Assembly: GCF_030144855.1 (NCBI RefSeq)
Contig: NC_082711.1
Span: 152,954,001-153,018,000 of the forward strand
Reading direction: 5' to 3'
DNA: 64,000 nt
Origin: Hypanus sabinus
Lineage: Eukaryota
This document shows, in pieces, positions 934-59,541 of this stretch (the stretch's first letter is position 1; every line of letters begins with the position of its first letter). The notes below the pieces were generated by a model that saw only the letters and a list, made by a program, of their open reading frames with translations, was not told the DNA's origin and ran no database searches. A program made the position numbers and the translations under genes.

Positions 934-1826
934 ACATAATGTTTATCGTGCTTTCTTCCATTTTACCAAGAACAGTAAATTAAACTTTTATACCAAGAGA
1001 GCCCAATGAACCTACTCAGTGTCAAATGATTCTTTCTTAATGTCTTTCAGAATGAACTGTTTTGGGGTTGGCTAGATAGAGTGGATAACAAAAAAAAAAT
1101 GGATACACAAATCATTAGAAGTTGCAGCACAGCACCTGATAACGAATACCATGATAATGATAATAACAAATACGTTTGTATTTGAGAACTAGCTGACACT
1201 GAAACTTCTGATCAATCCTGGTAGAAAACCAGATTTTCACAGGCAATAGCAGCTGCACAGGAATAAAATTAAAGCTCAGCCAACCCCTTCATTGCCAAAG
1301 GTAAAATGATCTCCAAGCTGTTCCTGTCCAGGACTCCATTTCACTCCAGTTGCCATTGCATAGCCCATATTTGCCCAAATTTTAAAACTTTAAGCCAATG
1401 CCAATCCTTTGAATCCTTTACTTTCTTCCTCTCCCTGCTTCCATTCAAGCTCACAGAGGCCAAACCACCCTCCTCATTTCTCTCAGCCCTTCACAGGAGC
1501 ATTATTTCCCCTTATACTTGGTTGGATACACCCAGGAGAAAGAGGACCACCATAGCTGCACAGTGACAAAATACTCAGCACCAAACTGCAAACCACTGAT
1601 CTGCTCTGGCTCAAACTGGTCTGAACCAGGTCCTAGGAGTTTTTATCCTATACTTAGCCAGCCCAAAGCAAGCATATTCCACATGGTTGGCTTGAGTTGA
1701 GTAGGAAGTGTCTGCATTCTAAATACTTCTGGACTATGAACATCTGGATTAAAAATATGCTGCTACTTTTACCTCTTCCTTTAAATCCTTTCTGTAAGAT
1801 GGAATGAATTTGGAGAGAGAACTTAC

Positions 1827-1991
1827 CTGAGTGCCCATTATTTCTAATAGTGCATTCCATATCATCATCATAGCCTTCAAAGTTAAAGGGACACAAAGAA
1901 GAATTGAGCTTAGCTTTCCCGGTTACAATGTTAATTGGAGACTGTTTCTTCTTTCCACATGTTTCGAACTGAGTCTGCCAATTACTGGGTC
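1827..1991 (-). CDS. CA4: Carbonic anhydrase 4-like, exon 3; the gene continues beyond the left edge of the window
   Basis: ttttttag| (G)PSNWQTQFETCGKKKQSPINIVTGKAKLNSSLCPFNFEGYDDDMECTIRNNGHS |gtaagt. Contains the alpha-CA QSPINI and NNGHS motifs; 165 bp, phase 1/1. Proximity to ZNHIT3 matches known vertebrate CA4 synteny. Confidence 0.93.
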
Positions 1992-4160
1992 CTAAAAAAG
2001 ATAATTCAATCCATTTTTCATGCAAAAGCAAACTTCTTGTGAATGTTAGCAAAACAATTGCCACATATACATTGAAGACATCCTCGGGAATTGAACACTC
2101 AGAACAGGCTGGCATACACGGAGGTATTGCCAAAGGTTGTCAGCTATTGATGAAATGTTGAAGAAGGGTCCCTTCCATCTGTCTGCTCAGAGAAAAGTAG
2201 AAGATCCCATGGCAATGGTATAGAAGAGCATGTATCACAGTCAACGTTGGAGACCAAGTCATTGGAATATTTAAAGCAGAGGCAGACATATTCTTGATTG
2301 GGAAGAGAGATGGGGAGAAGGCGGGATATTGGGGTTGAGAGGGAAAATGGATCAGCCATGAAGGAACAATAGAAGAGACTCAATGGGCCAAATGGCCTAT
2401 TTCTACTCCTGTATATTATGGTCTTATACCCTACAACCAAGAGGAACAGTTGTCATTTCTCTTGCTGTATCAACTACTGCTTTAACTGCAAAATCAGGGC
2501 AAGAACAGTAATTGAAATGTTTTAGTTCCTTCATGGGATGCAGATATCATTTATTATTCCTGTCCCCGATGTAGCAGACACTTTATTTAGAGACACAGGG
2601 TGGATCAGGCCCTCCCAGCCCAATGAGCCGTGTTGCCCAGCAGCCCACCTGTCTAACACAAGCCTAATCATAGGGCAATTTCCAATGACCAATTAACCTA
2701 GTAACTGGTACTCCTTTGGACTGTAGGAGGAAACCAGAGTATTCAGGGGAAACCCATGCGATTACGGGGAGAACGTACAATCTCCTTACAGACCACACCG
2801 AAACTGAACTCTGAACTCCGGATTCCCAAGGACTGCTGCACCACCATGGTGCCGTACTTGACAGCCTATGGACGTAGTTGACACATAACTGCAGTTCAAG
2901 GGCTGGAGTCAAATATGAGCTAGTTCAGTAAAGATGGCAGCTTCCTCTCTGTGAACTAGGTGACTGGGTTTTTACAACAGACTGGTATATTTAAGGTTAC
3001 CTTTACTGAAAGATATACATTCCAATTTTTGACACTTCAGAATTAAGACAAAATATTTATATATGTGTTATAATGGATGACATTTGTATACAACTTGCAA
3101 GCAGTGAAATTCAGTTTTCTAATAATACCACCATCAAACGGCAAGATCTATCTCTGAATATTTACTTGAAAAGACATTTGTAACCATTTAACACATTGCA
3201 ATTTAAAACAGCATATCATCTATACAACTATGAGGGCTATAGGTAACCCTAGGTCATTTCTAAGGTAAGGACATGTTCAGCACAACTTTGTGGGCTGAAG
3301 GGTCTGTATTGTGCTGAAGGTTTTCTATGTTTCTAACTGTATTACAGTTTCCATACAATTAATTTATACACTTCAAAACTGGGGAGAAAACTGGAAAGTA
3401 GACAGCGTTACAACAGCATGTTAAGTCAAACTGAGAAGCAGTTTGACTGATTGATCCAGCAGGTACCACAGGAAGGGGGGGGGCGGGTCTTTTTCCAGTG
3501 TTTTGTTTACTGTAGAGCTCCTGACCTGAGCCCAACAAGACACAACTGACATCTAGCGAGAATAGTTGGTTCCAGTGTTAAAGTAAAAAGACTTAAGTTA
3601 TTGTGCTCGAGGCAGTTTTAACTTCATTCCAACTAGACCTCGTTGCTCATGGATTCTGCTCTGGTATTCCAGGAGGAGCCACCTACAGGTTTTTCAGTAA
3701 GACATTTCTTTGCTGTTGTGCTAAAAATCCCTAGCAAATGGCCAATGTACCATTTGCCTTCTAAATTTCTTGTCTTGTCTTGTCTCATGTCATCTTTATG
3801 TACAAGGTCAACCCATTTCTTCTAAACACCAGCACCTCTCAATTTCAGCCATTTAAAAATAGACTCTGCATTTTCTATTGAGAATGAACTAAGTGCACTC
3901 AGTTTTATGGGTTATAGCTAGAGATGTTTAGAGTGAGGAGGCTAATGTGGGACAAGCAGATTCTTACATTGATGAGGAGGGAGCTGTTGTGTTCTACTGG
4001 CATATGGGCAAGAAGAGATGCTGTACAGTCTCTTTTTCACTGACTTCTCATTGCCTTCCAGCAAAGAGACCAAACTGTCAGTATCATCCCAAATGTTCCT
4101 TCGCTATTTTGAGTGATCTTAACCTAAGATTACATTCCCCCCCCCACCCCACCAGCTCCC

Positions 4161-19935: not shown

Positions 19936-21375
19936 AATAGACAATAGGTGCAGGAGTAGACCATTCGGCCCTTCGAGCCTGCACCACCATTCTGAGATCA
20001 TGGCTGATCATCTACTATCAATACCCGGATCCTGCCTTGTCCCCATATCCATAAGATACCTATCTAGTTCCTTCTTGAAAGCATCCAGAGAATTGGCCTC
20101 CACTGCCTTCGGAGGCAGTGCATTCCAGACCCCCACAACTGTCTGGGAGAAGAAGTTTTTCCTTAACTCTGTCCTAAATGACCTACCCCTTATTCTCAAA
20201 CCATGCCCTCTGGTACTGGACTCTCCCAGCAGCTGGAACATATTTCCTGCCTCTATCTGCTTCACTGCATCGGAAGGCAGTGGAGGCCAATTCATGATCA
20301 GCCATGATCTCAAAATGGCGGTGCAGGCTTGAAGAGCTGAATGGTCTACTTCTGCAGCTATTATCTATTGTCTATCTTGTCCAATCCCTTAATAATCTTA
20401 TATGTTGCAATCAGATCCCCTCTCAATCTCCTTAATTCCAGCGTGTACAAGCCCAGTCTCTCTAACCTCTCTGCGTATGACAGTCTGGACACCCCAGGAA
20501 TTAACCTCGTGAATCTAGGCTGCACTTCCTCTATAGCCAGGATGTCCTTCATTAACCCTGGAGACCAAAACTGTACACAATACTCCAGGTCTGGTCTCAC
20601 CAGGGCCCTGTACAAATGCAAAAGGATTTCCTTGCTCTTGTACTCAATTCCCTTTGTAATAAAGGCCAACATTCCATTAGCCTTCTTCACTGCCTGCTGC
20701 ACTTGCTCATTCACCTTCAGTGACTGATGAACAAGGACTCCTAGATCTCTTTGTATTTCTCCCTTACCTAACTCTACACCATTCAGATAATAATCTGCCT
20801 TCCTGTTCTTACTCCCAAAGTGGATAACCTCACACTTATTCACATTAAACATCATCTGCCAAGTATCTGCCCACTTACTCAGCCTATCCAAGTCACCCTG
20901 AATTCTCCTAACATCCTCATCACATGTCACACTGCCACCCAGCTTAGTATCATCAGCAAACTTGCTGATGTTATTCTCAATGCCTTCATCTAAATTGTTG
21001 ATGTAAATCGTAAACAGCTGTAGTCCCAATACCGAACCCTGTGGCACCCCACTAGTCACCACCTGCCATTCCAAGAAACACCCATTCACCGTTACCCTTT
21101 GCTTTCTATCTGCCAACCAGTTCTCTATCCATGTCAATGTCTTCCCCCCGATGCACTGAGCTTTGATTTTACCCACCAATCTCCTATGTGGGACCTTATC
21201 AAATGCCTTCTGAAAATCGAGGTACACTACATCCACTGGATCTCCCTTGTCTAACTTCCTGGTTACATTCTCGAAAAACTCCAATAGATTAGTCAAGCAT
21301 GATTTGCCCTTGGTAAATCCATGCTGACTCGGCCCAATCCTATCACTGCTATCTAGGTATGCCACTATTTCATCT
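19936..21375 (-). mobile_element. 5'-truncated CR1 LINE with a 334-aa open RT frame, nested in an older CR1 tail (about 19790-21570)
   Basis: ORF 20361-21365 contains SGVPQGSVLG and SKFADDTKLGG; the 3' UTR is at 19936-20250. Confidence 0.95.
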
Positions 21376-25179: not shown

Positions 25180-27700
25180 CTTTATTCTTCTTTATTTCAA
25201 AAATAAACTTTATTTATAATTAAAGTATATACACAAAACAATAAACGGTGCATGGTCAATTATATTCATGATCACTGCGTGTTAATTATTATTTTTTAAA
25301 ACCATTGCAACTTTTGAGGTCCTCCAGGGTGGTACACCACCTCATTGTTTGAGGGGCTGACCCAGCCAACTCAGCCCCTTCACTGTCTGGTATGGAGGGA
25401 AGGGGGGCTACTGCACAGGACCGAAAGAAGCTGTAGTAGGTTGTAAATCTAGTCAGCTCCATCTTGGGCACTAGCCTACAAAGTATCCAGGACATCTTCA
25501 GGGAGCGGTGTCTCAGAAAGGCAGTCAGTGTCCATTATTAAGGACCTCCAGCACCCAGGGCATGCCCTTTTCTCATTGTTACCATCATGTAGGAGATATA
25601 GAAGGCTGAAGTTACAAACTCAGTGATTCAGGAACAGCTTCTTCCCCTCTGCCATCCGATTCCTAAATGGAGTTTGAAGCTTTGGACACTACCTCACTTT
25701 TTAAAATACAGTATTTCGGTTTTTGCAAATTTTTAATAGTCTATTCAAAATACATAATTGACTTATTTATTTATTATTATGCTTTATTTTATTTATTATT
25801 TTTTTTCTCTCTGTTAGATTATGTATTGCATTGAACTGCTGCTGCTAAGTTAACAAATTTCATGTCACATGCCGGTGATAATAAACCTGATTCTGAAGAG
25901 GTGGAAGGAGTGTAGACTGTGGTCCTTCCCCACAGTGCCTTTGTGTTGATTGCACTGGGCCTCAGCGTGTACTCCTGCAGCCTGGGGTGTGTCGATTGGC
26001 AGCAGTTCCTTATGGACTCCTCAGCGGTGCTGGGGAACCAATAAGCTTCTGCAGACCAAAGAGCATCCATCATTCAGCTTCCAACAGTACTTACATAGAA
26101 ACATAGAAAATAGGTGCAGGAGAAGGCCATTTGGCCCTTCGAGCCTGCACCGCCATTCAGTATGATCATGACTGATCATCCAACTCAGAACCCTGTACCT
26201 GCTTTCCCTCCATACCCCCGATCCCTTTAGCCGCAAGGGCCATATCTAACTTCCTCTTAAATATAGCCAATGAACCGGCCTCAACTGTTTCCTGTGGCAG
26301 AGAATTCCACAGATTCACCACTCTGTGTGAAGAAGTTTTTCCTAATCTCAGTCCTAAAAGGCTTCCCCTTTATCCTTAAACTGTGACCCCTCGTTCTGGA
26401 CTTCCCCAACATCGGAAACAATGTTCCTGCATCTAGCCTGTCCAATCCCTTTAGAATTTTATACGTTTCAATAAGACCCCCCCTCAATCTTCTAAATTCC
26501 AGTGAGTATAAGCCTAGTTGATCCAGTCTTTCTTCATATGAAAGTCCTGCCATCCCAGGAATCAATCTGGTGAACCTTCTTTGTACTCCCTCTATGGCAA
26601 GAATGTCTTTCTTCAGATTAGGAGACCAAAACTGCACACAATACTCTAGGTGCGGTCTCACCAAGGCCTTGTACAACTGCAGTAGAACCTCCCTGCTCCT
26701 GTACTCAAATCCTTTTGCTATGAATGCCAACATAGCATTTGCCTTTTTCACTGCCTGCTGTACCTGCATGCCCACCTTCAATGACTGGTATACAATGATA
26801 CCCAGGTCTCGTTGAACCTCCCCTTTTCCTAATTGGCCACCATTCAGATAATAATCTGTTTTCCTGTTCTTGCAACCAAAGTGGATAATCTCACATTTAT
26901 CCACATTAAATTGCATCTGCCATGAATTTGCCCACTCACCTAATCTATCCAAGTCACCCTGCATCCTCTTAGCATCCTCCTCACAGCTAACACCGCCGCC
27001 TAGCTTCGTGTCATCATCAAACTTGGAGATACTGTATTTAATTCCCTCGTCTAAATCATTAATATATATTGTAAACTGGGGTCCCAGCACTGAGCCTTGT
27101 GATACCCCACTAGTCACTGCCTGCCATTCTGAAAAGGTCCCGTTTACTCCCACTCTTTGCTTCCTGTCTGCCAACCAATTCTCTATCCACATCAATATCA
27201 ATATTGATGCCTGTCGTGGTGTGTGCGACTGGGAACAGCCCGTCCCGGGGTCAGAATGTTCTGTTACGCATCTGCTTGTGTTGAACCACGCCCACTAAGC
27301 AAATTCATACTTTACAAGGAGGTGGATCACCATCTCTTCCCTACCACAGCCACCCTGAGGGCAGTGCATATCGGGGATGATACTTCACCTGACTGTCAAG
27401 GTCACTCTCTCTGTCAGCAATGTGAGATCGTGGTGAGTTCTGGCAATGAGTCATACCGACAGATGACATGGACTGTTTCCTCAGGGAACCACCCCACAGT
27501 ACCATAGGGTCTCAGACCTGCAGCATCTGCAGGTCGTCCTGTGCTGACCACTGCCAAATGCACTTGTGGTTAAAGGTGTTTACTTGGAGGATCTCGCCTG
27601 CTGAAGACAGGCAGTGTAGCAAATGGCCAGTTGACTAGTGTGCAGACCCAGATCTATCCTCCGCAACACCAGGGACAGGGAGAGTAGTTGTTAGCATAAT
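25180..27700 (-). mobile_element. Degraded Tx1/L1-like LINE 3' portion, split by a Rex-type fragment (about 25382-25895) and a CR1 (26093-27198)
   Basis: The minus-strand remnant reads GLFPVAH...|KYCWKL..DALWSA...RLQEY...KALWGRTTV continuously across the CR1. AATAAA and an A-rich tail lie near 25180-25215. Confidence 0.6.
26093..27198 (-). mobile_element. 5'-truncated CR1 LINE
   Basis: ORF 26281-27201 is the RT C-terminal half (SGVSQGSVLGP, KFDDDTKLGG, RPHLEYCVQFWSP); (ACATAGAA)n tail at 26093. Confidence 0.95.
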
Positions 27701-34852: not shown

Positions 34853-36336
34853 GATTAAAGACACCCCCTTTTTTAGTTGGGTTGAACTTCCCCACTTTCC
34901 CTGCACTCCAACCAACTTGCCTACCCGTTTCTGATGAAGCGTCTTGGACCTGAATCCGTTTGCCTTTCCACGATGCGGTCTGACCTGCTGCGATTTTCCA
35001 GTATTTTTCTATTTTTGTTTCATGATCTTCCCTCACAGCCACCGCCACCACCCCATCTCACATCACATTACATTTTATCCGAAACTTTTGTAAATAAAAT
35101 CCCAGTCAAAGTAAATAGAATCGTTACACGGTATGAAAATAAAATCACGCCATGTTCTGCTGCATTCCGGCATAATTCATCTCTTGAAAGTTGACTTGTT
35201 AATTAACAGCGTGTAATTAATTTTTAATAGCGCGTCTTGAATTTATATGGCATAATTAGAATTTTGAAATTATAACATTAAATAGATTGACACTATTACG
35301 GAAAAAGGTGATGTCCTGTGCACTGTGATTAGGAATTCCTCTTCAGTGCAAGAGCACAGCGACACCTAAAGACTGCTGGTAAATGTGTTTCTTGTACTTT
35401 ATTAGTAACACAGTGTAGGTCAATTTAAAGGAAACTTGGAACAATTTACATCTTCGTCGTATAGTAGAAAGTTCATTTTTGTTAAACCCGGGAGAATAAG
35501 AAGTTTGATTAGTGTGGTACCGCCTCTATTAAATGTTTTGTTTCCAGAAAGTATTGCGAATTTCCTAGTTTCTAAGAATCCGCGTTCTTCATCACTCGCC
35601 TTTTCGAAGTGCCTTTAACCGCTGACATTGGTCAATACTTAGAAGTACAGTAATGTTTTAACACCTTCTGTGGATGCCAGAAGCTTCCGACACCCAAAAT
35701 ATTTTTATGCTTAGATTTTGAGGACATGCTGGGCTGTCAGTTCCTCAGTTTCGACTGAGGACAATATTTTGACAATATTGGTCACATTTATTTTCATTGT
35801 ATGGACCTGTGCTGTATTGTTCTCTTATCACCTCAATCGTTATATCATAATATGTTTTGAATTATATTAAAATGTGTATTACGGGAGTGGTCTGCAATGT
35901 AATAATGCAAAATATTGAAATTATATCCTAATAGAAATTCGAAATAAATATAAACCACGCACGTTGATGTAATATCTCCGGATCAATCAAGCTTGCGAGA
36001 AATGCAAAACTTCCAACGTAAAGTAAAACTTCCAACACCCTGAGTTTCTTTCTATCCTTGTGCAAGAAAGTTCATCTTAACCTCTAACAATAGCTATTAT
36101 TGAGCCTATCTAACCCCAAAACTGTAGGCTACTTTTCTACGGGTGCCATAATAGCAATACCATGAACCGTCTCAGTCGATGGGCTTCTTTTCCCGGTTTT
36201 CTAGGAGTTTTAACTACTAGTAACCGCACCGAGACTCTGCTAGACTGGTGTCTCAGATACTTTTAATGTTCACATTACCGAGCAGCGAGTCAGAGTTGAG
36301 TTATATTCGCTGCAAAGTGAAAGTGTAAATTAAATC

Positions 36337-36766
36337 ATAGAACATAGAAACCCTACAGCACAATACAAGTCCTTCGGCCCACAATGCCTTCCCGAGCATG
36401 TACTCACTTTAGAAATTACCTAGGGTTACCCATAACGCTCTATTTTTCTAAGCTCCAGGAATCTCTTAATATCTGTCCCAGAATCTCTTAAAAGACCCTA
36501 TCGTATCCACCTCCACCACCGTCGCCGGCAGCCCGTTCCACACATTCACCACTCTCTGCATAAAAAACTTACCCCCTGACATCTCTGTACCTACTTCCAA
36601 GCACCTTAAAACTGTGCCCTCTCGTGTTAGCCATTTCAGCCCTGGGAAAAAGCCTCTGACTATCCACATGATCTATGCCTCTCATCATCTTATACACCTC
36701 TATCAGGTCACCTCTCATCCTCCAACACTCCATGGAGAAAAGGCCAAGCTCACTCAACCTATTCTC
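36337..36766 (-). mobile_element. CR1 3' fragment; related copies at about 6530-6830 (+), 42459-42660 (-), 50045-50430 (+) and 3230-3335 (+)
   Basis: MRGDLIEVYKMMRGIDHVDSQRLFPRAEMANTRGHSFKV, shared with ORF 50071-50355. Confidence 0.9.
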
Positions 36767-36840
36767 GTAAGGAAATCTTTTGCTAAAGTAATTTTTTGTT
36801 ATTTTTTAAGAAAAGGCATGCCAAGAGTAATACTATAGTT

Positions 36841-36920
36841 CAGGGCTCCCCAACATTTGTTATGCCATGGACCTTTACCATTAACCGAGAGGTCCGTGGA
36901 CCCCAGGCTAGGAAACTCTG
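36841..36920. mobile_element. 80-bp hAT-type MITE
   Basis: CAG...CTG imperfect TIRs and a perfect 8-bp TSD ctatagtt (36833-36840 and 36921-36928). A related copy lies at 61959-62038. Confidence 0.85.
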
Positions 36921-37172
36921 CTATAGTTTCTTATGTAACAATTGGGTTAATTAAAATTGGAGTCATGGTAATCAAGGCAGAATAAATATTTACAGAAATG
37001 ATAACAAAACAGATGTAACGTTGATGTCTATGCAAAGATGATATAAATAAAGGCGAGTAGTAAATCTGCACCACTCTGAAGGTAACTAGGGAACCAGTGA
37101 TAACCCTCTGTACTATTCTATATCAGTTTTGCTGGTAGAACCCGTGCTAGCCTTTATGTACCGAACAGCAAA

Positions 37173-38150
37173 ATGAACCACGTGTGGAACGGCTCAGTAG
37201 GACACGGCAACAGCAGCGTGACGTGGAGCTACTGGTTGGTTCTGTCGCTGGGAATCCCGCAACTGGGCATCAATTTAATTTCCATCGTCTGCAACTGTTT
37301 AGTGATCCTCAGCAACATCTCTCCAAAGCACCCGAACAAGCCCATCTTCATTCTCTTTAGGAGCTTGGCTCTGTCTGACCTTCTCTCAAGCATATCTTCT
37401 TTCTGGATCGCCTTACTGTTCATTTATAACCCGGAGAACACTATATATGGCTCGAGAGAACTGCTGCACCCCTATGCCATTCTTGCCATCTCTATACTAT
37501 CGGCCGTCTACAACTTGATCGGCATCGGCGTGGAACGCTATCTGACCCTGTCGAATGGCTTGAGACCCAGGTGCAGGATCTTCCACTACCAGCCCCGGAC
37601 GATGGCCATGATCAGCTGGCTACTGGCGGCCATTTTCGGGGGGCTGCCCCTGATGGGCTGGAATTGCCTCCACGATGATGAAAAATCATCTGCCCTTTAC
37701 CGGCCTCTCTGCATCGATTACCTGGTGTTTATCACCATTCCCAATGGCGTTATAACCTTCGCTTGCCTATTCTTCACTTATGTTTCCATCATTATAATTT
37801 TAAGGAGACAGAAGTGCATAATTACAGCCCAGGGTCACGTTAGTAACAGGTCCAGAGTGGCCGAGGCCCACGTCACAAGGACAAGTATCATAATTTGGAT
37901 CATGACGGTAGTCTCGTACGCCCCGTTCTTTTCAGGCGTCCTTTGGGATGCGCTGGACCACTCTCAGCATGGCGACCTTCAAATACACATTTTTATTTTT
38001 AGGAATTTCACTGCCATCATGATAACGCTAAACTCTTTAAGTAATCCTATGGTCTATAGTCAGAAATTAAAAGGACTACGAAACACTATCAGTTCATTCA
38101 AATCTTCTCTTGGCAAAAGAATTCATGTGCGAACAGTAAGAATTGCTTAA
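37173..38150 (+). CDS. Intronless class A (rhodopsin-like) GPCR, MECA / lysophospholipid / GPR3-6-12-like orphan, 325 aa
   Basis: Seven hydrophobic segments. N-terminal sequons NGS and NSS; TM2 SLALSDLL; TM3 ERY; TM4-ECL2 LPLMGWNC (typical of S1P/LPA/GPR3/6/12 receptors); TM7 NSLSNPMVY. The ORF is uninterrupted. Confidence 0.93.
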   Translation: MNHVWNGSVGHGNSSVTWSYWLVLSLGIPQLGINLISIVCNCLVILSNISPKHPNKPIFILFRSLALSDLLSSISSFWIALLFIYNPENTIYGSRELLHPYAILAISILSAVYNLIGIGVERYLTLSNGLRPRCRIFHYQPRTMAMISWLLAAIFGGLPLMGWNCLHDDEKSSALYRPLCIDYLVFITIPNGVITFACLFFTYVSIIIILRRQKCIITAQGHVSNRSRVAEAHVTRTSIIIWIMTVVSYAPFFSGVLWDALDHSQHGDLQIHIFIFRNFTAIMITLNSLSNPMVYSQKLKGLRNTISSFKSSLGKRIHVRTVRIA

Positions 38151-40174
38151 AAGCATTTACCCGGACACCCATTTCTGAACTCGGAAGGAAGAGGCGCAGT
38201 ATTTTCGCAGTAAGGAGTTTAGAGACGAGCCGACAAATTTAAGCATCTCTGGACGGTGTCAGATTATATTAGCTTCAACGGAGAGGGATTTCTGAGCAGG
38301 AACTCAGACATGCCAAAGTGAAGAAAGGCTTAGTACAGCAATTACATTTGTTAGCAATCCTTTTACTTCGGCAGAGTTTGCTATAAGAACGCTGACTGCA
38401 GCTGTTCTCAGTCATAGAATACAGAACAGCGTACTGAACTGGAACGTCGAACAGAAAGCGGCACTTCCACCTAATAAGTCCTACAATATCATGTTAAACC
38501 AATTGCATGTGCCTGTGATCCCTCCATCCCCGCCTGTATAAATGCCCCTTAAACGTCGGCTTCCACCACTTTCTCTGGCAGCTTGTTCCAGACGCTTACT
38601 TATGTGCAAAAAAACCTGCCTCCCACATCTCCTTTAAACATCCCCCCCCCCTCAGATTTTAAACCTATACCTTCCAGTATCTGACATTTCCACTCCAGGC
38701 AAAAGACTGATAATTCACCTTACTTTTATATATAGTACTCAGCATCAGGTCTCAGTCTCCATTGGCAGCATCCCATGAAAACACTCCTGCATCTTCCCCA
38801 AAACCACAACATCTTTCTTGTAATGTGGCAATTGGTCTTCACACAATATTGTCGTCTAACCAAACTTTTATACTTAACATTCAGACTGATGCTACATGCC
38901 TCTTTACCAGCCTACCTACTGTATTGCCACATTCAGGGAGCTATGAACTTGACCCCCAAGAGCACATCAACGTTCCCAAGGGTGTTGTCATTTACTAAAT
39001 GTTTTCTGCTTGAACAGACCTCATGCGTGGCAGGATTAAATTTATCTGTCATTTTTCTTGACTTATTTACAATTGGCCTATATCCTGGTAGATCCTTTCT
39101 CACTCACCACAAGCCTGACAATTTTTGTTTTGTGCTTTACTTAATTCATTCAGTCCTGTGCACTTGTCAACTCCATTTCCTAATCGTCTATCATTTTCAG
39201 GAAAAACCTCACACGTGCAATTCTTTCTCTAAGGGATACTACTAGTAATGCTGAATTGTACGTTGATGCAAAGAACATTTCACTCTGCAGTCACCTCAAG
39301 GAATAGCTGAATTGTCAGTCACTGATGGTGTCATATTTTACCATCTGCTCAGAGTATTTGATACTTTAAGGGTAAAACTAATTTCAGTATTATTGGTAAA
39401 ATCTCTTGCTTTTCTATTGCATTGCAATTCAGTAATTTTGTTTTACTAAATATCTTTGCAGAATCAACTAGTAGATACAATTCTGTTCATTAGTTAATTG
39501 AGGCTAATGACTTTTGTTCAGGCTAAATTTTGTTTTTATTATATGTACCACTGTAATGTGGTGACTTGATGTGTCAAAGCTGTGTGCTAAGTACAAGCTA
39601 TGCTTCTCAAATTTGATCTTTCTTAACAATAAGTGTGTGATTGAACGGAAATAAATGTTCAGCAGTATTCTAAAATTATAGCTCTTGTCTGAGCACTTTT
39701 CTCCTCTATTATATTTGGAACATAACATGAAAAAAACAAACTGCTGGGAGACACTCAGAGGAGTAGATAGCGTATGTGGAAAGAGATATAGAATTAATTA
39801 CTTATTTCCAGTATTTGCAATTTAAAACACAAATTACTAGGTATACTTTCCTGGAAAAGAAGATGCTTTTGCAACTCTTCAGGCATGATAACAAATATTT
39901 CAACTAATGCAATTTCCCCACTACAAATAAAGCGTTCGTCAATGAAATTCTGTGCTAAAGTAAAACTATCAATGTGGAAACAATCAAATGGAGGGACACA
40001 CCAGTATCAGGTTCACACTCAATACCAATTTATTCAAAAACATTTGAATAACAAAGTATGAAGGTGTCCTTGCATCATTTTTGACATCTCCTGCTTTTTT
40101 ATGCAGATCAAGAGTTATCTTGGAACACATACATATGGCTGGAGGAACTCAGCAGGTCAGGCAGCAACCATAAA

Positions 40175-40212
40175 CAGTTGATGTTTCTGGCTGAGACCAT
40201 TCATCAGAACTG
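40175..40212 (-). ncRNA. Minimal type I hammerhead ribozyme motif in a Penelope terminal repeat (best-preserved copy)
   Basis: Minus strand reads CAGTT-CTGATGA-A-TGGT-CTCA-GCCA-GAAA-C-ATC-AACTG. Both core boxes are intact, with stem I CAGUU/AACUG and stem II UGGU/GCCA. Confidence 0.6.
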
Positions 40213-41501
40213 GAAAGGGGGGGGGGGGGAAGTAGCCAGAAAAAGAAAGTGGGGGAGGGGAAGGAGTACAAGCTTGAAGATGAAAGGTGGGATGAAGTGA
40301 GAAATTAGGAGGTTTATCTTACCAAAGTGTTTTGGCCTGAAACGTCAACTGTACTCTTTTCTCTGATGCTCCCTGGCCTGTTGAGTTCCACCAGCATTTT
40401 GCATGTGTTGCTCGGTTTATCTTGGAAATTAGCTTATATTCATTTATTCACAAATTATAGATATTGTTAGCAAGAGTAATACTTAATACATTAGAAAAGG
40501 GAGTATGACTACTGTGTTCTTTGCAATAGGGAGGTCTAAATTTTGACCTGTAACTTTGAAGTGTTTTGTGGATGACTGCAAAGCTCAGGCAAGTCACTTG
40601 CAGTAGGCTACTCATCCTTTGACTTGCAACAATTTGTCTTCCTTTGCAGTCAGTCTTTGTGTAATGTTTTTCATACATTCTATTGCATTTCTTTATTTTC
40701 CTGCAAATACCCGCAAGAAAATGAATCTCAAGGTAGTATATATGTGCATTGATAATAAATTTTACTTTGACCTTGACTTTCGCCTTCCATGTTATGTTAT
40801 TGAAGAGTCTGAGATATTGGCAGAAAGATACAATTCTGTGCATTTGACTATGTCAGCTGTTCCTTAATGTGTGTAAGAGGCAACTGTCCCAATCTTGACA
40901 CACCTCATTTATTGTGAGAGCAATCTTGAAGGGTCAATTTTAGTAGATATTATTCAGTCATGGTCAAATCCAGTATCTTGGAACACATACAAAATACTGG
41001 GGAAACTCAGCAAGTCAGACAGCATCCATGGAAAGGAATAAACAAACAACTTTTCTGGCCGAGATCCTTCATCAGGACTGGAAAGGAAGGGGGAAGCAGC
41101 CGAAATAAGAAGGTGGGGGAAGGGGAAGGAGTAATGGAAGGTGGAAGCCAGGTGGGTGGGGAGGGGGAGGTTTATGTTGAGGTTACGTGATTTATCCGGT
41201 TTCAGGTCTATTTTGTTTTGTTTCCATACAACAGTGTTGATTGCCCAGCCGGCCTCTCAAAGTCCAACCCTGCATCCCCATCGTGAGAGGTGGAAATGGA
41301 CAAGGCCGGCCAACAGGGCTCTGGTGAAGCTGTATGGCCAATCCCCTGTACAGTGGATACAACATAATGCAGAGGCATTGGTGACCTCCAACCACACCAT
41401 CGATCTTAGAAGATGGAGATTAGAGATCAATGGTCTGTGCTCCACTTGAGAGCTAAGAGCCTTGGAAACATGGAAAACCTACAGCACAATACAGGCCCTT
41501 C

Positions 41502-49802: not shown

Positions 49803-52586
49803 TTTTGCTATTGTCTCTCATCTTTAATTTTTTGTTTCTCAGGCCAAGTAGCTTCCCAAAAGTAATTAGTCATACAAATTCTGCTTTCTCAATTTTCATT
49901 GTGTTCCTTTCATAAACTAATTCAGACATACTGACGGTGCCAAGGTGACATGTATGTGCAGCCTAATTGAACAGCCTTTAGCTCTTGTCGAGGTACAAAC
50001 ACGTCAACCCTGGGAAAACCATTCCTCTGAAGAAATGCCTTTTGGCCTTTTCTCCTTGAAGTGAAGAAGGATGAGAGGTGACCTGTTAGAGGTGTATAAG
50101 ATGATGAGAGGCATTGATCATGTGGATACTCAGAGGCTTTATTCCAGGGCTGAAATGGCTAGCACGAGAAAGCACAGTTTTAAGGTGCTTGGAAGTAGGT
50201 ACAGAGGAGATGTCAGGGGTAAATTTTTTATGCAGAGAGTGGTGAGTGCGTGGAATAGGCTGCTAGTGACAGTGGTGGAGGCGGATACGATAGGGTCTTT
50301 TAAGAGGCTCCTGGATAGGTATATGGAGCTCAGAAAAATAGAGGGCTATGGGTAACCCTAGGTAAGTACATGTTCTGCATAGCATCGTGGGCCGAAGGGC
50401 CTGAATTGTGCTGTAGGTTTTCTATGTTAAAATGTATTTTTTTGCTCTCTTGGCACTTTGGAGAACTACACTATAGAAAGTGGTGCAAAAGAATGTAGGC
50501 TAGAAAGCTCACAGACTTGAGCCATGAAGTCAACCTCAGCATTCATAAATGCAAGGAATCTGCAAAAGGATGTGGTCAGGTCAAACATGAGGGTCAAGAA
50601 GGTGGCACATGGTGTATCACGAGGGTGCCATTCATTGGTTTTCAAAATAAAACTGAACAGAGTATTTTTAAGAAACTAAAAAAATCAATTTATTACAATA
50701 TTTTGTAAACATGCCACTATACCAACATAACAGAGAGTAAACACTGTGTCAGAAGCTTTCTGCACAGAAATTTTAAAAATACCTTGATGAGATTGTACAG
50801 GGATTTGATTACACTAATAGGAACACTGAGTGCTAAAGTTGTACTTGCCATGAATATTAACTTGATATGAAGTCAGCACAAGATATATTCACTAGACGAC
50901 AATTAAATACAGACAGAATGGTGATGACTGGGTTGTAATGACTTAGAAAAATGAGATACGCTATCAAGATTTGGAGAGTGATTGACAGGGTAAATGCTGA
51001 AAGGTTACTTCCCATACCTGGGGAGTCTATATCTAGGAAGCATTGTCTTGAATAAAAGGTAGATCATTCAGGACTGTAGTAATGCAAAACTTCTTAATGC
51101 AGAATTTCAGAAAATTTATTCTGCAGAGGAATGTTGAGTATGTTCTAAGATGAAATTGATAAACCTTTGAACCAAGTGAATGAGGATATTAGTATTAGGT
51201 GGGAAGCAGATACAAAGTTAAGGATCATCGGGTACCATAATCTGAGATAGTGGAGCTAACAGAGCCACACTGCCTCACAGCTTCAGTAACTTAGGCTCAT
51301 TTCTGACCTCCAGTGCTGCCAATGTAGAATTTGTTCATTTTCCCTGTGACCACATGAACTTCCTCCAGGTACTCCCTGTTCCTGCCACATCCAATGGAGA
51401 GGCTGGGGAGATTTAATAGTAGTCTGGAGAGGATAAAATGGGATTAGTGCAGGATCATTGTAAGTAGGAGCTTAATGGTCTGTGTAGACATGGTAAATCA
51501 AACAGCCTGTGCTGTATTACTATATGGATCTATGACTTTACTGAATGATGGAATACTCTGTCTAAATTTTTCTGTTCTACACTCAGTAGCACACAACATG
51601 ATTAGGATACATGTTTGTAAGTGGCTTGCCTCTTATGAAGTTCCAAGTGTCACTTCTACAAGAATTAACAGAAGGTAACAGATGATTAACAGATGATTCA
51701 TGTAACCATTGAATCTAATATCAGGACAAAATGACTTCCCCTTCTTTTTCCATTCCAAGTTCTGGCTCCTGATTCTGAGTCTGAACATCACCTCTCAGTC
51801 TTCAACATTAAGGAATAAAGACCTATCCTGTCCAACCTGTCCCTAAAATTTTACAAATATAACAAAAATAAATGTTGCAAACAAGTTTATTCTGATTACT
51901 CATACATTTAAATTTCCAATTATCAGTTGGAACCTTTCTAGAAACTAGGTGTCAACAGTAAAGAGAGACAGACATTTCAAATTGATGATCAACGACAGAG
52001 GGGAAGGCAGTACATTTGGGCTGTCTGGGACTAGTACGTCCTAGCAGCATAGAGTACACCCCTGGTCAACGGGATATAATTTAAACGTGTTCTCAATTTT
52101 CAGTAATGAAATTCTATAAAATCCCTACTGATACTAATGAAAAAAAGGCAGCAGAAGTGCTGAAACTCAGCTGGATGCCGATGGAATAAAAGACACTTTG
52201 CAGAATGAATCCAAGGATCTACTGAGGCAAATTGTACAAACTAGAGCATCACCATCTTGGTATAACTGCCAAACAAACATTTCATAAGCAAACTATTCAC
52301 AATTTACTTTGACAGACGATTGCCTCTGCAAAGAACAACGTATGAATTGACATAAGTGCAAAGGTTTTATTTAATCTGAATAATTATTTGCCGATACTTG
52401 GGCTAACACCGCCCCCCCCCAACCCCGAGTGATAGAGATGACTCACAGTTGAGAGCTAACCGAGTTATAAATGTTTAATACGACGGTCGGCGGCGATGGT
52501 GAGAGGATCCCGAACGGGTCAGAGTTGGCGCTTCGACGTCGTCGTCAGGGTAACGCGCGCGGTGGTTGCTGGGAGCCGATGGTGGC

Positions 52587-52657
52587 ATGATGAAGGTCTG
52601 CGGCGTGTGTGAGGAGCAGGCTACTAAGTACCGATGCCCGGCCTGTGATGTGCGCTA
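52587..52657 (+). CDS. ZNHIT3: ZNHIT3 exon 1 (zinc finger HIT domain)
   Basis: MMKVCGVCEEQATKYRCPACDVR(Y)|gtaagt. This is the CxxC...KYRCPxC zf-HIT motif, within a CpG island. Confidence 0.95.
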
Positions 52658-52674
52658 GTAAGTGAGCGGTGGGA

Positions 52675-52849
52675 GCGGCGCTAGGGGCTGCCGGGCTTAC
52701 GGCGGCGAGCGGGCGGCGCTAGGGGCTGCCGGGCCTACGGCGGCGAGCGGGCGGCGCTAGGGGCTGCCGGGCCTACGGCGGCGAGCGGGCGGCGCTAGGG
52801 GCTGCCGGGCCTACGGCGGCGAGCGGGCGGCGCTAGGGTCTGCCAGGCC
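52675..52849 (+). repeat. GC-rich minisatellite, 38-bp unit, about 4.5 copies
   Basis: The unit ctaggggctgccgggcctacggcggcgagcgggcggcg recurs at 52681, 52719, 52757, 52795 and partially at 52833. Confidence 0.95.
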
Positions 52850-53228
52850 AGTTTCCTTGGATAAGCGCCGACCAAATTGCGACCTGTACTACAGGACTCT
52901 GTCCGGATTATGGCGGCGAGCGAACAGCTGGTAAAGTTTAGTTTATTATCACGTACGCGCTTCACCAGTACGGAGTGCTACTGGTACAGAGGCACTAGCG
53001 AGCGAGTTGTGTAGGTTCACACAAGTTACAGGCAGCAGTGACGGAGAAAAGACTGCGAAAGGAATCACTAGTGCAAAACAAGTGAGTTTAGGACCTGCTT
53101 CGGTGGAGAAAACCTTGGGTTTTTCCTATAGAGTATGGGTGGTGGTGTCTTTTAAAGCATCTGCATCAATGAGTGAGCTGCAGTTCTGTTGCTTGAGGAT
53201 TTTATGACAGTAAACAGAGGATGGCTTT

Positions 53229-54960
53229 TATCTGGATTAACACCACCTCCACAAACACAATCAGCACAGGTGTCCCTCAAGGCTGTGTATTTAGCCCCCC
53301 CCCCCCCCCACTGTCTTCACTTTGTACTAGTGACTGTGAGGCTAAGTACTGCTCAAATGTTGTATTTAAGTTTGCTGACTACAGCACTGTTGTTGGCCGA
53401 CTCAAAGGTAGTAACGAGTTGGCAATCTCAATGGCCCTTCACACAGCTTTAGACCATCTGAACAACACAAGCACCTATTTCAGGTTGCTATTCACCGACT
53501 ACAGTTCAACATTCAGGTGGTGACGAGAGGGCATACAGGAACGAGATGTACCAACTAGTGGAGTGGTGTCGAGCCACAACCTTGCACTGAACATCAGTAA
53601 GATGGAAGAGTTGATTGTGGACTTCAGGAAGGGTAAGACAAAGCAACACACCAATCCTCATAGAGGGATCAGAAGTGGAGAGAGTGAGCAGCTTCAAGTT
53701 CCTGGATGTCAAGATCCCTGAGGATCTAACCTGGTCCCAACATATCAATGCAGCTTTAAAGAAGGCAAGACAGCAGCTATACTTTATTAGGAGTTTGAAG
53801 AGATTTGGTATGTCAACAAATACATTCAAAAACTTTTATAGATGTACTGTGGAGAGCATTCTGACAGGCTGCATCACTGTCTGGTATGGTGGGGTGGGGT
53901 GGGGGGGGGGAAGGCAGGCTAGTGCACAGGACTGAAAGAAGCTGCAGAGGGTTGCAAATTTAGTCGGCTCCATCTTTGGCACTAGTCTACAAAGTATCCA
54001 GGACATCTTCAAGGAGCAGTGTCTCAGAAAGGTAGCGTCCATTATTAAGGACCTCCAGCACCCAGGGCATGCCCTTTTCTCACTGTTACCATCAAGTAGG
54101 AGGTATAGAAGGCTGAAGGCACACACTCAGCGATTCAGGAACAGCTTCTTCCCCCTTTGTCATCTGATTCCTAAATGGACATTGAACCCGTGAACAATTT
54201 CAATTTCCGAATATATATTATTTGGTTTTTGCACGATTTTTAACCTATTCAATACATGTATACTGTAAATGATTTATTTATTATTATTTTCTTCTGTATT
54301 TTTATTTGCAATGAACTGCTGTTGCTAAGTTAACAAATTTCACAGCGTGTGCTGGTGATAATAAACCTGATTCTGATATACGAGGGAGATTGAAAATCTA
54401 GTTTAATGGTGCCACAACAATCTCTCACTTAACATCAGCAAAACCAAAGAGCTGATTATTTACTACAGGACAAGGAAACCGAAGGTCCATGAGCCAGTCA
54501 TCATCGGGGGGATCAGAGATGGAGAGGATCAGCAATTTAAATTCCTCAGTTATCATTTCAGAGCATCTGTCTTGGGTCTAGTACATGAATGCTATTGCAA
54601 ACAAAGCACAGCTGTACTTCTACTTCCTCAAAAGTTTTCAAAGATTCTACATGCCATCTAAAACTTTGACAAACTTCTAAAGGTGTGGGATGAAGAGTGT
54701 ACTGACTGATTGCATCAAGGCCTGGCATGGAAACGCCAACACCCTTGAATGGAAAAGCCTACAAAAGGAAGTCTAGACCATCACGGGTAATGCCCTTCCC
54801 ACCATTGAGCATATCTACTAGGAGTGGTGTTGCAAGAAAGCAGCATCCATCATCAAGGAACCCCATCATTAGGCTATGCTCTCTTCTCACTGCTGCTATC
54901 TGGAAGGAGGTGCAGGAGCCTCACAACCCACACCACCAGGTTCAGGAACAGTTATTGCCC
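53229..54960 (+). mobile_element. Two tandem Rex1/L2-type LINE fragments in ZNHIT3 intron 1
   Basis: STGVPQGCVFSP, FKFADYSTVVG, VERVSSFKFL..LTWSQH and YRCTVESILTGCITVWYG motifs. The tail ataaacctgattctga lies near 54360-54378; the second, older copy is at about 54380-54960. Confidence 0.88.
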
Positions 54961-56031
54961 TCAGGAGAATTGCAGTGTTCCCTCTAATTTTTTTTTACAG
55001 CTGTGCAGGCCAATCATTGCTCTGAGCAGGAAATTTTGATACTTCTTGAAAGCTGTGGGGCACTTTAAATGTTTTGTTTGGAATATGCATACTATGAATA
55101 TATAGAATGAAATCTGAAAACATACTTTTGATTTTGTTCATTAATTGAAGGGTATAATGAAATGCAGTACAACAAAGAAAATCTTCCGTGCTTTGTAAAC
55201 TTTTTGTAGTTGTACCCAATTCCAGCAGTGGGGCAACAAAGACTATGTGCGCAGAGCATTTCAGTTGCTGTATGACTGCACAGTTTAGAGGTAACGGACC
55301 ATCATGCTCTTGAACTAAAGCCGATAACTTCACTTGCCCAACTGTTCCCACAAACCTATGGCCTCACTTTCAAGGACTCTTCATCTCATGTTCTTGATAT
55401 TCTTTGCTTATTTTTAATATTTATTATTTTTTAATTTGCAGATTGTTGTCTTTTGCATAGGGGTTATTAGTCTCCGTGTGCAGGTTTCTTTGCTTCATTG
55501 GTGTCTTGGTATCTATTTTGAATGGCCACAAGAAAATGAATCTCAGAGTTGTTGTATTTTGACATGTATGTACTTGGATAATAAATTTACTTTTACCTTT
55601 GAGTTGTACCTATAGGTTCTTTGGGGAAAATAATTTAATTGGTCCTGCTTTCAAACTAAATTGCCCATGTTGAAAGTTGCTTATGAATCTTCTTACTCAT
55701 AATGATTTCAGGCAGTATCTTGGTAATGCTTTAATTGGTCGTTTGTCTTTAGAACAAAAATGCCTCTTGATGGCATTTCCATCAATCTGTGCCCTCTGGC
55801 TTCTCTCATTTTCTCCATCTTGTTCTCCATTTGTTGCAGTTTTTACTTGCTGTCATTGAGACACACTGGTCTGAAAGAAAACTATTGCTAATCTGCTTTG
55901 GTTCTTTTAGCAAATTTTGCTGCCTCAACTGCCCAATCTTCAGACTTTGATTCTTTAAAGTTATATTATGTGAATGTTACTAAAATGTGATTCTTTATTA
56001 TATTTAATAATTCTATTCTCTTTATTTTCAG

Positions 56032-56063
56032 TTGTTCTGTAGGATGCTACAAGAAACATAAGG
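56032..56063 (+). CDS. ZNHIT3: ZNHIT3 exon 2
   Basis: tttattttcag|T TGT TCT GTA GGA TGC TAC AAG AAA CAT AAG G|gtatgg encodes CSVGCYKKHK, completing the zf-HIT motif; 32 bp. Confidence 0.95.
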
Positions 56064-56591
56064 GTATGGACAGTCCTCTGATTCCTTACAAATTAATTTG
56101 GTTACTGTAAAATATGCAAGCTTCTAAAGAAAATGTTATCTGTGTAATTTGGAGAATAGTCAACTGGATCTTCAGATTGATGATGGGGGGGGGGGATGGT
56201 AATACAAAATTACTTCAGGTCCATCTATGGCTTTTGCAAACGCAAAAATGGTGGTGCCTTGTTCTTTTGTGTTAAGATTGAGTAGAAAGCTACACCTTCA
56301 TTCATGATATAACAACATTTTATACCTTCCTGGTATAATGTGCCATAAGTAAGAAATCTCATCCTTTGTTTATGTTGTATTTTACATATCCCGATTTAAA
56401 GGATCAACCTGACCAGTTTTTTTGGAACATCATCCCACCTTCTAAACTGTGACTTGGCTTTATGAAAGAATCTAAATGTTGTACTGTGAACTCTGGTTTT
56501 GTGTTAAAACGTATATTGATAATTACATAGAACCATTTTAATTGCACTTGTTTATCTAAAATAACTAAATTTGGTGCTTTTGTTTTACTAG

Positions 56592-56681
56592 ATGATTGCA
56601 AACCACAAAAGTCTGGTTCAGTGTCATCAACTTCAGAGCTTTCTACAGAAGTTGGGACAATAACATGGCAAGAAGGCAAAG
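56592..56681 (+). CDS. ZNHIT3: ZNHIT3 exon 3
   Basis: ttttactag| DDCKPQKSGSVSSTSELSTEVGTITWQEGK |gtagat; 90 bp, phase 1/1, a low-complexity linker. Confidence 0.8.
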
Positions 56682-57410
56682 GTAGATACCATGCCGTCAT
56701 ATTAGAAAGGATAAATATCTACAAAGCTAGAATTGTTTAAAGAATTGAGTGTAAACACAACTTTATAAATCATTCAAGATTGGGCCATTTAAAAAAAAAA
56801 CAAGCATTTTATAGATATTAGTGCAGTTATGTCAGGATAATGTAAGCTTGGCATTGAAATGTTTTCTGTTTTGTGCAGTAAATGTAAACTATCAACTTGC
56901 ATCGTTCTGGTGCTACCCACAGTGTTGGGATAGAAAGTTGTCTTCTACAATTTGCCCAAATCAATGGGACAGATCTTTCAAAGCTCAAGTACAGTACTCA
57001 TTTTCTGCTGGATGTGCATTTAAGTAAAACCCATTTATTTTTCATTGAGCACCAATGTTCCCTTATAAAGTACTATTGGTGAACAGAGGCATGGGGAGAT
57101 TGGGAGGGAAATAAAAGTAGATTCCATCCATGTTCAAAAAGTGAAAGTAGAATTTAAAGCTTTGATCAATAGAATTATACATTTGAATCAATTGTTTCCT
57201 TTTAAAATAGACTCATAGTCTGGATTAAAGATTTGCCACAGAGGCCAAACAATACCAAGATCTTGTTCAACTCATTTAAATTTATTATGATCATGTTGAA
57301 GAGTGAAAGAGACATGGCCTAGGAATTTAATCCATTATGTAGTAACTGTTTATAATCCCTGTGCACGTTAGTTGTTCTTTTAAACAGTAATGGTATATTC
57401 CTGTCAACAG

Positions 57411-57473
57411 ATGACATACTGGGTGAAGATGAAGAATCTGATCGCGTGCCCCTAGAGAAATTAAAACTGTTGG
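57411..57473 (+). CDS. ZNHIT3: ZNHIT3 exon 4 (5' boundary uncertain; alternative in-frame acceptor at 57372)
   Basis: DDILGEDEESDRVPLEKLKLL|gtatgt; matches the acidic-DRV motif of ZNHIT3. Confidence 0.85.
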
Positions 57474-58269
57474 GTATGTAGACAAAAACAGATCACAACA
57501 AAAACATCTTTTTGATTCCTGACATTTACTATTAGAAGGGTAATTTGAACAAACTAAATTAAATTGGTTTAAATGATTAGCATACAAAACTGATTTAGTT
57601 CAATGACATTCATCACTGTTTGAGTGCTGCGAGAGATGTTCCTGAGTCTAAGAATTTGTTCTGTTGACTCATGTGACAATATTGACTGTCACTGAGGACT
57701 TTATAACACTAGAAATTGCAGGAAGAATCGATTACTTCATAAAATATGAAGGCAAGCTCTTTTGTCCAGTAAGCCCACATGGTCAAACAATCTATTTAGA
57801 ACGTAGAGCAGTACAGCACAGTATGGGACGTTCATTTCACGATGTTGTGCCAACCATTTCACCTACTCCTTGATCAATTTAACCCTTCCTTTCTACATAG
57901 CCCATAACCCACCATTTTCTTTCATTCATGTGCCCTAAGAGTCTCGTAAATGTCCTTAGAGTATCCTTTACACTAATCTGTGTTATTCCTCCCACATTCC
58001 CATCACTTCTCATGAGATTTTTCCACTCACAATACGGACATTTCAGTGGCTAATTAGCCTGCCACTCTTAGAATGGAGGGAAGGGAATGCCATAAACTCA
58101 GGCTCCACCGACACAGCACCTAATTTCCATGAGCTATACCATTGTGCAACCTGTATTGCTTCTATTTTGATTATTTTATCTTCCTTTGAGCGCCCACCCA
58201 CCTAGACTCCTTGCTGAATGTTTGATATTCACTATTAGATAGTACTACCTCGTGAGAGGAATATACAAT

Positions 58270-59197: not shown

Positions 59198-59344
59198 GAT
59201 TAACACTAGCCTAGTGTTTATTACTGCTTCTAACTTTCGTCATTTACAAATTTTAAACAGGTCTTGAGCAAAGTGAGTGACTACAGGTCCTGAAACTTCA
59301 ATGTAATAAAGCACTAATTATTATTATTTTTGCTTTTCTAACAG

Positions 59345-59541
59345 CAAAATCTGAGGAATTGAAGAGTTTACTTTGTAATCCTCATCTTAGACAGTTGCTA
59401 TTGACAATAGACAGAGCAGAAGATAAAGAAAACATCATGAAATCGGCTATGCAAGAACCAATTTTTGTAGAATTTGCTGATCGATGTCTACAAGTAGTTG
59501 AACCCCAAGATAAAGAAAATGACATCTCTGGCTCCTGGTAA
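59345..59541 (+). CDS. ZNHIT3: ZNHIT3 exon 5 (last coding exon)
   Basis: ttttctaacag| AKSEELKSLLCNPHLRQLL...AMQEPIFVEFADRCLQVVEP...SW*. This is the conserved ZNHIT3 C-terminal domain. The joined CDS is 453 nt (150 aa). Confidence 0.95.

Follow-up and report, generated by a model that had tools for sequence, protein, structure and literature searches.

An old, constrained family of intronless orphan GPCRs located between CA4 and ZNHIT3 in jawed vertebrates

The window, that is, the entire 64,000-nucleotide stretch of the genome of the batoid Hypanus sabinus that was analysed here, contains on its plus strand (37173..38150) a complete single-exon coding sequence for an orphan class A GPCR (ATG-initiated, 325 aa plus stop). 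The gene is intact, has orthologues throughout the jawed vertebrates, evolves under constraint and encodes a protein with the rhodopsin-type seven-transmembrane (7TM) fold. Judged by sequence, the locus holds a genuine orphan receptor gene that looks functional and belongs to an old, unnamed family. We consider it probable, although well short of assured, that this gene is the batoid orthologue of an unnamed, constrained and intronless GPCR family sited between CA4 and ZNHIT3, the members of which would be gated by a ligand, probably a lipid-like one.

The receptor open reading frame (ORF) (37173-38150, plus strand) runs uninterrupted through 325 codons and is the third longest in the 64-kb window and the longest among those that do not encode reverse transcriptase; the two ORFs of comparable length are both reverse-transcriptase fragments. 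The start codon has an A at −3 and is preceded by in-frame stop codons; the window contains no runs of N. The predicted protein matches the Pfam 7tm_1 profile (PF00001) with E=2.4e-20 and 73.6 bits (cut-off 30.5) over residues 41-295, and its AlphaFold2 model (pLDDT 76.8, pTM 0.76) consists of seven helices and helix 8 (predicted boundaries: TM1, 20-49; TM2, 57-85; TM3, 95-127; TM4, 139-161; TM5, 181-220; TM6, 226-261; TM7, 271-297; helix 8, 302-310), so that both the profile and the modelled fold place it in class A. The fold search with this model matched at least 500 GPCR structures, with S1PR1, LPAR1, GPR3, GPR6 and CB1 as the best PDB matches (TM-scores 0.7-0.8); these matches of a predicted structure support the fold class and nothing beyond it. 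By sequence, the top matches in the PDB were LPAR1 (E=1.3e-17), S1PR1, GPR12, S1PR5, GPR6, CB1, GPR3 and MC5R, with E-values of 1e-17 to 1e-9 for the best of them, and a Protein Atlas feature search with the receptor returned generic GPCR clusters only.

Examination of the flanking sequence places the receptor between CA4 and ZNHIT3, on the strand of ZNHIT3, as stated in a preliminary description of this DNA (exons at 1654-2133 on the minus strand and 52566-59520 on the plus strand, respectively). The carbonic anhydrase is represented by an ORF with the 5' coding exon (1654..2133, minus strand; Pfam Carb_anhydrase, E=2.8e-16, profile positions 2-65), the best solved relatives of which are CA4 (E=1.5e-9); this CA4-like gene and the receptor are divergently transcribed, and the remainder of the former lies beyond the left end of the window. 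The first coding exon of ZNHIT3, with the zf-HIT region (52566..52669, plus strand; tblastn with the Leucoraja ZNHIT3 exon, 70% identity, E=4e-11), is located about 14.4 kb past the receptor stop codon, both genes being on the plus strand, and the GC content peaks over this region (0.50 at 52-54 kb). A weak match corresponds to a probable internal ZNHIT3 exon (57404..57475, plus strand; tblastn with P0084, E=0.004), and the last coding exon, with the ZNHIT3_C domain, is found at 59338..59520 (plus strand; tblastn with P0084 and P0100, E ~1e-16 to 1e-21). P0084 (Melospiza, song sparrow) and P0100 (Acipenser, sterlet) are public gene models in which the receptor is fused to ZNHIT3; these fusions are annotation artefacts, yet they provide independent evidence of the adjacency of the two genes.

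The same arrangement is found in distant vertebrates. In the chimaera Callorhinchus and in ostrich, carbonic anhydrase (minus), the receptor (plus), ZNHIT3 (plus) and MYO19 (minus) all lie inside 21 kb; in two skates, wombat and sugar glider, ZNHIT3 is downstream of the receptor on the same strand, and in the gymnotiform teleost Brachyhypopomus, a carbonic anhydrase is upstream of it. At every locus examined, the span of the receptor gene equals 3 x (residues + 1), so that all of these loci have kept the single coding exon. The 35 kb that separate the CA4-like gene and the receptor in the window are occupied by LINE-like RVT_1 debris, including reverse-transcriptase ORF fragments (Pfam RVT_1) at 15410-16463 (plus) and at 20361-21365 and 26281-27201 (both minus), which explains why this interval is far bigger than in the chimaera and ostrich. 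The receptor is flanked by interspersed repeats of very high copy number (36182-36970 and 40122-40900), the summed depth of which reaches 1e4 to 1e6 in genomic contigs of four related taxa; these contigs break at both repeats.

A search of 5.8 billion proteins detected about 80 family members (E-values 1e-155 to 1e-58), the next match being S1PR1 at 1e-15. When 1.84 billion cluster representatives were scanned exhaustively with HMMER, four more came to light, namely, those from gar (47% identity to the window receptor), sterlet (the gene model fused to ZNHIT3), Brachyhypopomus, the sole teleost (33%), and bowfin, a very divergent protein denoted P0101 (28%). The family is represented in sharks, skates, chimaera, coelacanth, gar, paddlefish, sturgeon, one teleost, amphibians, reptiles, birds and three marsupials. 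Identity to the window receptor is 69-75% in skates and sharks (the nearest relative is from Leucoraja, 75%), 54% in the elephant shark, 55% in coelacanth, 49% in paddlefish, 43-53% in amphibians, turtles, crocodilians, squamates and many birds, and 48-49% in the marsupials Monodelphis, Petaurus and Vombatus. Chicken, opossum, gar, skate and non-Xenopus frogs are among the species with clear orthologues. Neither the 5.8 billion-protein search nor the HMMER scan (1.84 billion representatives) turned up a member in placentals, monotremes, cyclostomes or Xenopus; a profile search with the family alignment, across the best 8000 candidates, added a few squamates, nothing from these four groups and no further teleost. 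The proposal that this lineage was lost in mammals therefore holds in part: none was found in placentals, but opossum, wombat and sugar glider have the receptor next to ZNHIT3. With marsupials retaining the gene, any loss would be confined at most to placentals, apart perhaps from monotremes.

The bowfin protein P0101 (Amia ocellicauda, locus L003, 10001-10933) keeps Y6.48, E6.30, P5.45 and K7.35-N7.36; neither CA nor ZNHIT3 was detected at distances of up to 10 kb from it. The protein is an orthologue that has evolved fast or, alternatively, a paralogue of long standing.

At a dS of 0.2, which is unsaturated, Leucoraja and Rhinoraja give a dN/dS ratio of 0.19-0.23; for the window receptor against skates, the ratio is 0.16-0.22 (six sequences, with dS saturated outside the batoid pairs). 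The values are thus about 0.2 and not near 1. In a 27-sequence alignment, 27 columns are invariant, every core microswitch among them, and the intact orthologues span a divergence estimated at about 450 million years. Searches for sequencing runs listed none from RNA; those from four related taxa that match the locus proved to be low-coverage genomic contigs, about 98% identical, that break at the repeats, and not transcripts. Among the differences listed for these contigs, none is an indel or a stop within the ORF, and indels are present immediately outside it; the ORF carries at least 12 substitutions, and those listed comprise 6 synonymous and 6 non-synonymous ones, counts that are indicative. 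On these comparisons, the receptor family is apparently maintained by purifying selection.

A phylogenetic tree of 52 proteins (IQ-TREE, LG+C20 PMSF) recovered the family as monophyletic (support 100/100), with an internal branching order that matches the species tree, the window receptor being placed as that of a batoid, and with bowfin P0101 as its sister on a long branch (96/91). In the maximum likelihood (ML) tree, the family and the bowfin protein pair with three amphioxus receptors (96/90), and a clade that consists of CB, GPR3/6/12, LPAR and S1PR leaves the family outside (95/88); the LPAR clade and the GPR3/6/12 clade are each supported at 100/100 without the family. The AU test did not reject constrained topologies in which the family formed one clade with LPAR and S1PR (p=0.138) or with GPR3/6/12 (p=0.059). 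The deep placement of the family in the ML tree thus appears soft, and its nesting in no named receptor clade appears firm. Falling outside every named clade, the family has no 1:1 orthologue among the characterised mammalian receptors, in line with the preliminary description.

The automatic names of the family members are in mutual conflict (LPAR1-A/B-like, LPAR2-like, LPAR3-like, S1PR1/2-like, GPR6-like and MC5R-like), and such scatter is what marks a family that has no name of its own. In the searchable literature, we found neither a description of a CA4-ZNHIT3-linked receptor family nor a functional or ligand report on any of its members. The fish orphans gpr185 and gpr186 were considered as possible identities, and GPR185 (GPRx) is a Xenopus oocyte receptor. 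Neither identification was borne out: gpr186 is the teleost (fish) GPR3, and GPR185 has members in Xenopus and many teleosts (Rinne et al. 2019, PMC6504862), a distribution that differs from that of the present family, for which no Xenopus member and a single teleost one were found. For this cluster, the survey of vertebrate GPCRs by Rinne et al. (PMC6504862) includes the clades S1PR6, S1PR7, GPR185, GPR186, GPR188 and GPR119B, which resemble the present family in being rhodopsin-type vertebrate clades with no human orthologue and with representatives in several vertebrate classes. Compared by description rather than by identifiers, no clade in that list for the cluster was recognisable as having the distribution and the neighbours of this family; species distribution and similarity likewise spoke against GPR188 and GPR119B.

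With R122 taken as R3.50, the window receptor contains E121-R122-Y123, L158-PLMGWN-C165, S248-Y249-A250-P251 and N291-PMV-Y295, so that all the motifs that had been read from the 325-aa single-exon 7TM ORF (ERY, LPLMGWNC and NPMVY, along with SYAP in place of CWxP) are in fact present. The core microswitches of class A receptors (N1.50, D2.50, E/DRY, W4.50, P6.50 and NPxxY) are in place as N41, D69, E121-R122-Y123, W149, P251 and N291-P292-Y295, and all are invariant or nearly so in the family. The absence of C3.25 (and hence, of the TM3-ECL2 disulfide) and of P5.50 are traits of the MECA cluster, and both apply here: position 3.25 is L97 in the window receptor and L, I or M across the family, and 5.50 is A, T or V (T195 in the window). 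The nearest relatives of the receptor, by both sequence and fold, are cluster members. The original assignment to an ancient orphan lineage in the lipid-receptor (MECA) neighbourhood is thus upheld, with orthologues from chimaera to marsupials and matches of the LPAR1/S1PR1 kind. Among the cluster members, CB1 and CB2 share hydrophobic-ligand pockets and close fold matches (TM-scores ~0.73-0.83), and CB1 also has an acidic residue at 6.30 (Asp) opposite R3.50; CB1 differs by K3.28, CWxP, a long N-terminus and its placement in a separate clade.

The CWxP toggle motif (C6.47, W6.48) is absent from the window receptor. Tyr occupies 6.48 in all 69 full-length members, Ser occupies 6.47 in 68 of the 69, and each of 26 members compared has T, A or S at 6.44. 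By contrast, the sampled S1PR, GPR3/6/12 and CB1 sequences have W6.48 and, except for CB1 (Leu), F6.44; TM6 of human LPAR1 reads CWTP. For LPARs, the comparison of TM6-7 was based on the alignment with human LPAR1 and left out P0109, P0127 and P0151; these database models of LPAR1, LPAR3 and LPAR2, respectively, are unalignable in TM6-7, with apparently aberrant 3' exons. Invariant in 26/26 members are Y3.29, Y3.41, E3.49, R3.50, W4.50, P5.45 and Y5.58 in TM3 to TM5, E6.30, V6.33, I6.40, W6.41, V6.55 and D6.58 in TM6, and N7.36, N7.45, P7.50 and Y7.53 in TM7, with R7.35 in 25 of the 26. At 6.30, the sampled LPAR, S1PR and GPR3/6/12 sequences have M, S or T, and CB1 has Asp. The family signature can be written as Y3.29, E6.30, W6.41, S6.47-Y6.48, R7.35-N7.36 and, in ECL2, S-x-L-Y-x-P-x-C, all of which are found in the window receptor. 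This pattern of conservation indicates that the remodelling of TM6 is a coordinated, fixed trait of the family and no accident of one lineage. Separately, the amphioxus protein P0115 (Branchiostoma lanceolatum, 'S1PR1-like'), which groups with the CB/GPR3/LPAR/S1PR clade, has C-Y-A-P in TM6 and, accordingly, Y6.48; a toggle-position Tyr may have evolved repeatedly in the cluster.

In the HMMER alignment with human LPAR1, the second ECL2 Cys of that receptor corresponds to S172 and the Tyr of its PLY to C180, in agreement with the earlier observation that this Cys had become Ser and that a new Cys had appeared nearby. C180 is present in 68 of the 69 full-length members and C165 in 65. The four without C165 (P0049, P0058, P0065 and P0073, which are marsupial-type) keep C180, have G or V in place of the Cys of GWNC and gain a Cys five residues later in ECL2 (...SWNG/V-LDSGC...); this shifted residue looks like a moved partner for the same ECL2 disulfide. 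The C165/C180 pattern fits a putative intraloop ECL2 disulfide, in line with the re-pairing suggested in the preliminary description. Another pair of cysteines, one in the N-terminal region (1-19) and one in ECL3 (258-272), occurs together in 58/69 members; both are absent from 9/69, which are all 8 cartilaginous fishes (including the window receptor) and one lizard, and 2/69 have one of the two alone. This distribution suggests a disulfide between the N-terminus and ECL3 in bony vertebrates that is missing from cartilaginous fishes.

At the mouth of the pocket, positions 3.28 and 3.29 are P100 and Y101, which align with R/Q of human LPAR1 (HMMER alignment). The R-E or R-Q pair is lacking, as previously noticed, and across the family, the head-group anchors of LPAR1-3 (R3.28/Q3.29) and S1PR1-5 (R3.28/E3.29) are absent; 3.29 is Tyr in 26/26 members, and 3.28 varies among A, P and V, so that the pocket mouth does not look strongly fixed on its TM3 side.

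The arguments that follow on the pocket and the ionic lock are inferred from sequence positions together with general knowledge of GPCRs. The mechanism that we favour starts with a family that would have resided between CA4 and ZNHIT3 since before the split of cartilaginous and bony vertebrates. Its members would be ligand-gated, that is, activated by a ligand and not always on. They seem to have kept the inactive-state and G-protein machinery (D2.50, E3.49-R3.50-Y3.51, Y5.58 and NPxxY), and the invariant E6.30 could form an ionic lock with R3.50; the E6.30-R3.50 pair is the classic inactive-state ionic lock. The retention of D2.50, ERY, Y5.58 and NPxxY, combined with the invariant E6.30-R3.50 pair, favours a ligand-gated receptor over one that is always on. 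The pocket itself would be greasy, with hydrophobic residues at 3.32, 3.36, 3.37, 5.42, 6.51, 6.52, 6.55, 7.39 and 7.42, and the ligand would probably be a hydrophobic, lipid-like molecule, the polar end of which would be read at the pocket mouth by Y3.29 and R7.35-N7.36 instead of R3.28 with E/Q3.29. The only fixed polar groups near the pocket mouth are Y3.29, D6.58 and R7.35-N7.36; in LPAR1, residue 7.36 is a Lys that contacts the phosphate. The hydrophobic pocket, the disappearance of the TM3 head-group pair and the small number of fixed polar groups favour, with modest confidence, a lipid-like ligand that would be read through TM7 and Y3.29. Activation would then proceed through a family-specific TM6 switch, in which S6.47-Y6.48, a small residue at 6.44 and W6.41 would replace CWxP with F6.44.

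Alternative explanations of this locus differ in what they make of the same features. The gene is set amid retroelement debris and high-copy repeats, and no RNA run was among those listed, as might befit an ORF that arose by chance or a non-functional relic in decay; nevertheless, the 7tm_1 match (E=2.4e-20), the full-length intact orthologues with conserved start and stop over an estimated ~450 million years, dN/dS of about 0.2 and the 27 invariant columns of the 27-sequence alignment make this extremely improbable, and conservation has effectively refuted it already. More has to be said of a constitutively active, Gs-coupled receptor that, like GPR3/6/12 and GPR185, would set a basal cAMP tone without an acute ligand, the activity envisaged as one option in the preliminary description. 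Like the present family, GPR3, GPR6 and GPR12 are orphan or lipid-leaning, have a single coding exon and a similar length, and all three are among the sequence and fold matches of the receptor; a joint clade with them is not formally rejected (AU p=0.059). They differ, however, in having CWxP, F6.44 and T6.30 and in forming a separate 100/100 clade, with the family outside it in the ML tree; identity to them is about 25%, and the invariant E6.30 combined with ERY, against Thr in the sampled GPR3/6/12, weakens the case for constitutive Gs activity. We consider such a GPR3-like model unlikely, and less likely than the ligand-gated mechanism.

The family could also be a divergent subtype of lysophospholipid (LPA or S1P) receptor, as the automatic names would have it. 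It resembles the EDG-type receptors (LPAR1-3 and S1PR1-5) in several respects: LPAR1 (E=1.3e-17) and S1PR1 are the closest solved relatives, C3.25 and P5.50 are absent from both groups, both have GWNC at the TM4/ECL2 border, E3.49-R3.50, D6.58 and NPxxY, N3.42 is common to the family and LPARs, and a single clade with LPAR and S1PR is not rejected (p-AU 0.138). Yet, the residues that would bind the phosphate and amine of such ligands, R3.28 and Q/E3.29, have given way to A/P/V and an invariant Tyr; SYAP stands in place of CWxP, with Tyr for W6.48 in 69/69 members, and T/A6.44 in place of F; and W6.41, E6.30 and R7.35-N7.36 are invariants peculiar to the family. Moreover, identity to the LPA and S1P receptors is only 25-27%, the automatic names contradict each other, the coding exon is intronless in every species examined, the CA4-ZNHIT3-MYO19 neighbourhood is distinct from those of the EDG-type genes, and the ML tree leaves the family outside the LPAR+S1PR clade. 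All this renders a lysophospholipid receptor subtype quite improbable, and we retain the ligand-gated family with its own switch and head-group site as the preferred reading.

If that reading is extended to physiology, the family would represent a vertebrate signalling channel about 450 million years old, comprising a receptor and probably a lipid-like mediator, with a Tyr6.48/Trp6.41 switch and an R7.35/N7.36 site, that was lost in placentals; we offer this tentatively, as a possibility that we would not yet bet on. Were it true, human- and mouse-centred pharmacology would have overlooked the channel because placentals lost the receptor, and the Tyr6.48/Trp6.41 switch along with the TM7 head-group site would be unlike those of every characterised lipid GPCR. 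Pharmacology being mostly based on human and mouse, families lost in placentals go unexamined, however old and tightly conserved they may be. The misleading automatic names (LPAR1/2/3-like, S1PR1/2-like, GPR6-like and MC5R-like) call for a proper family name. The receptor is tractable, with a single exon and orthologues in chicken, opossum, non-Xenopus frogs, gar and skate, and the family-wide change of W6.48 to Tyr, accompanied by changes at 6.44 and 6.41, amounts to a natural experiment on the class A toggle switch. The ligand could reveal either a mediator that is still present in placentals and acts there via another receptor or a pathway that was lost together with the receptor.
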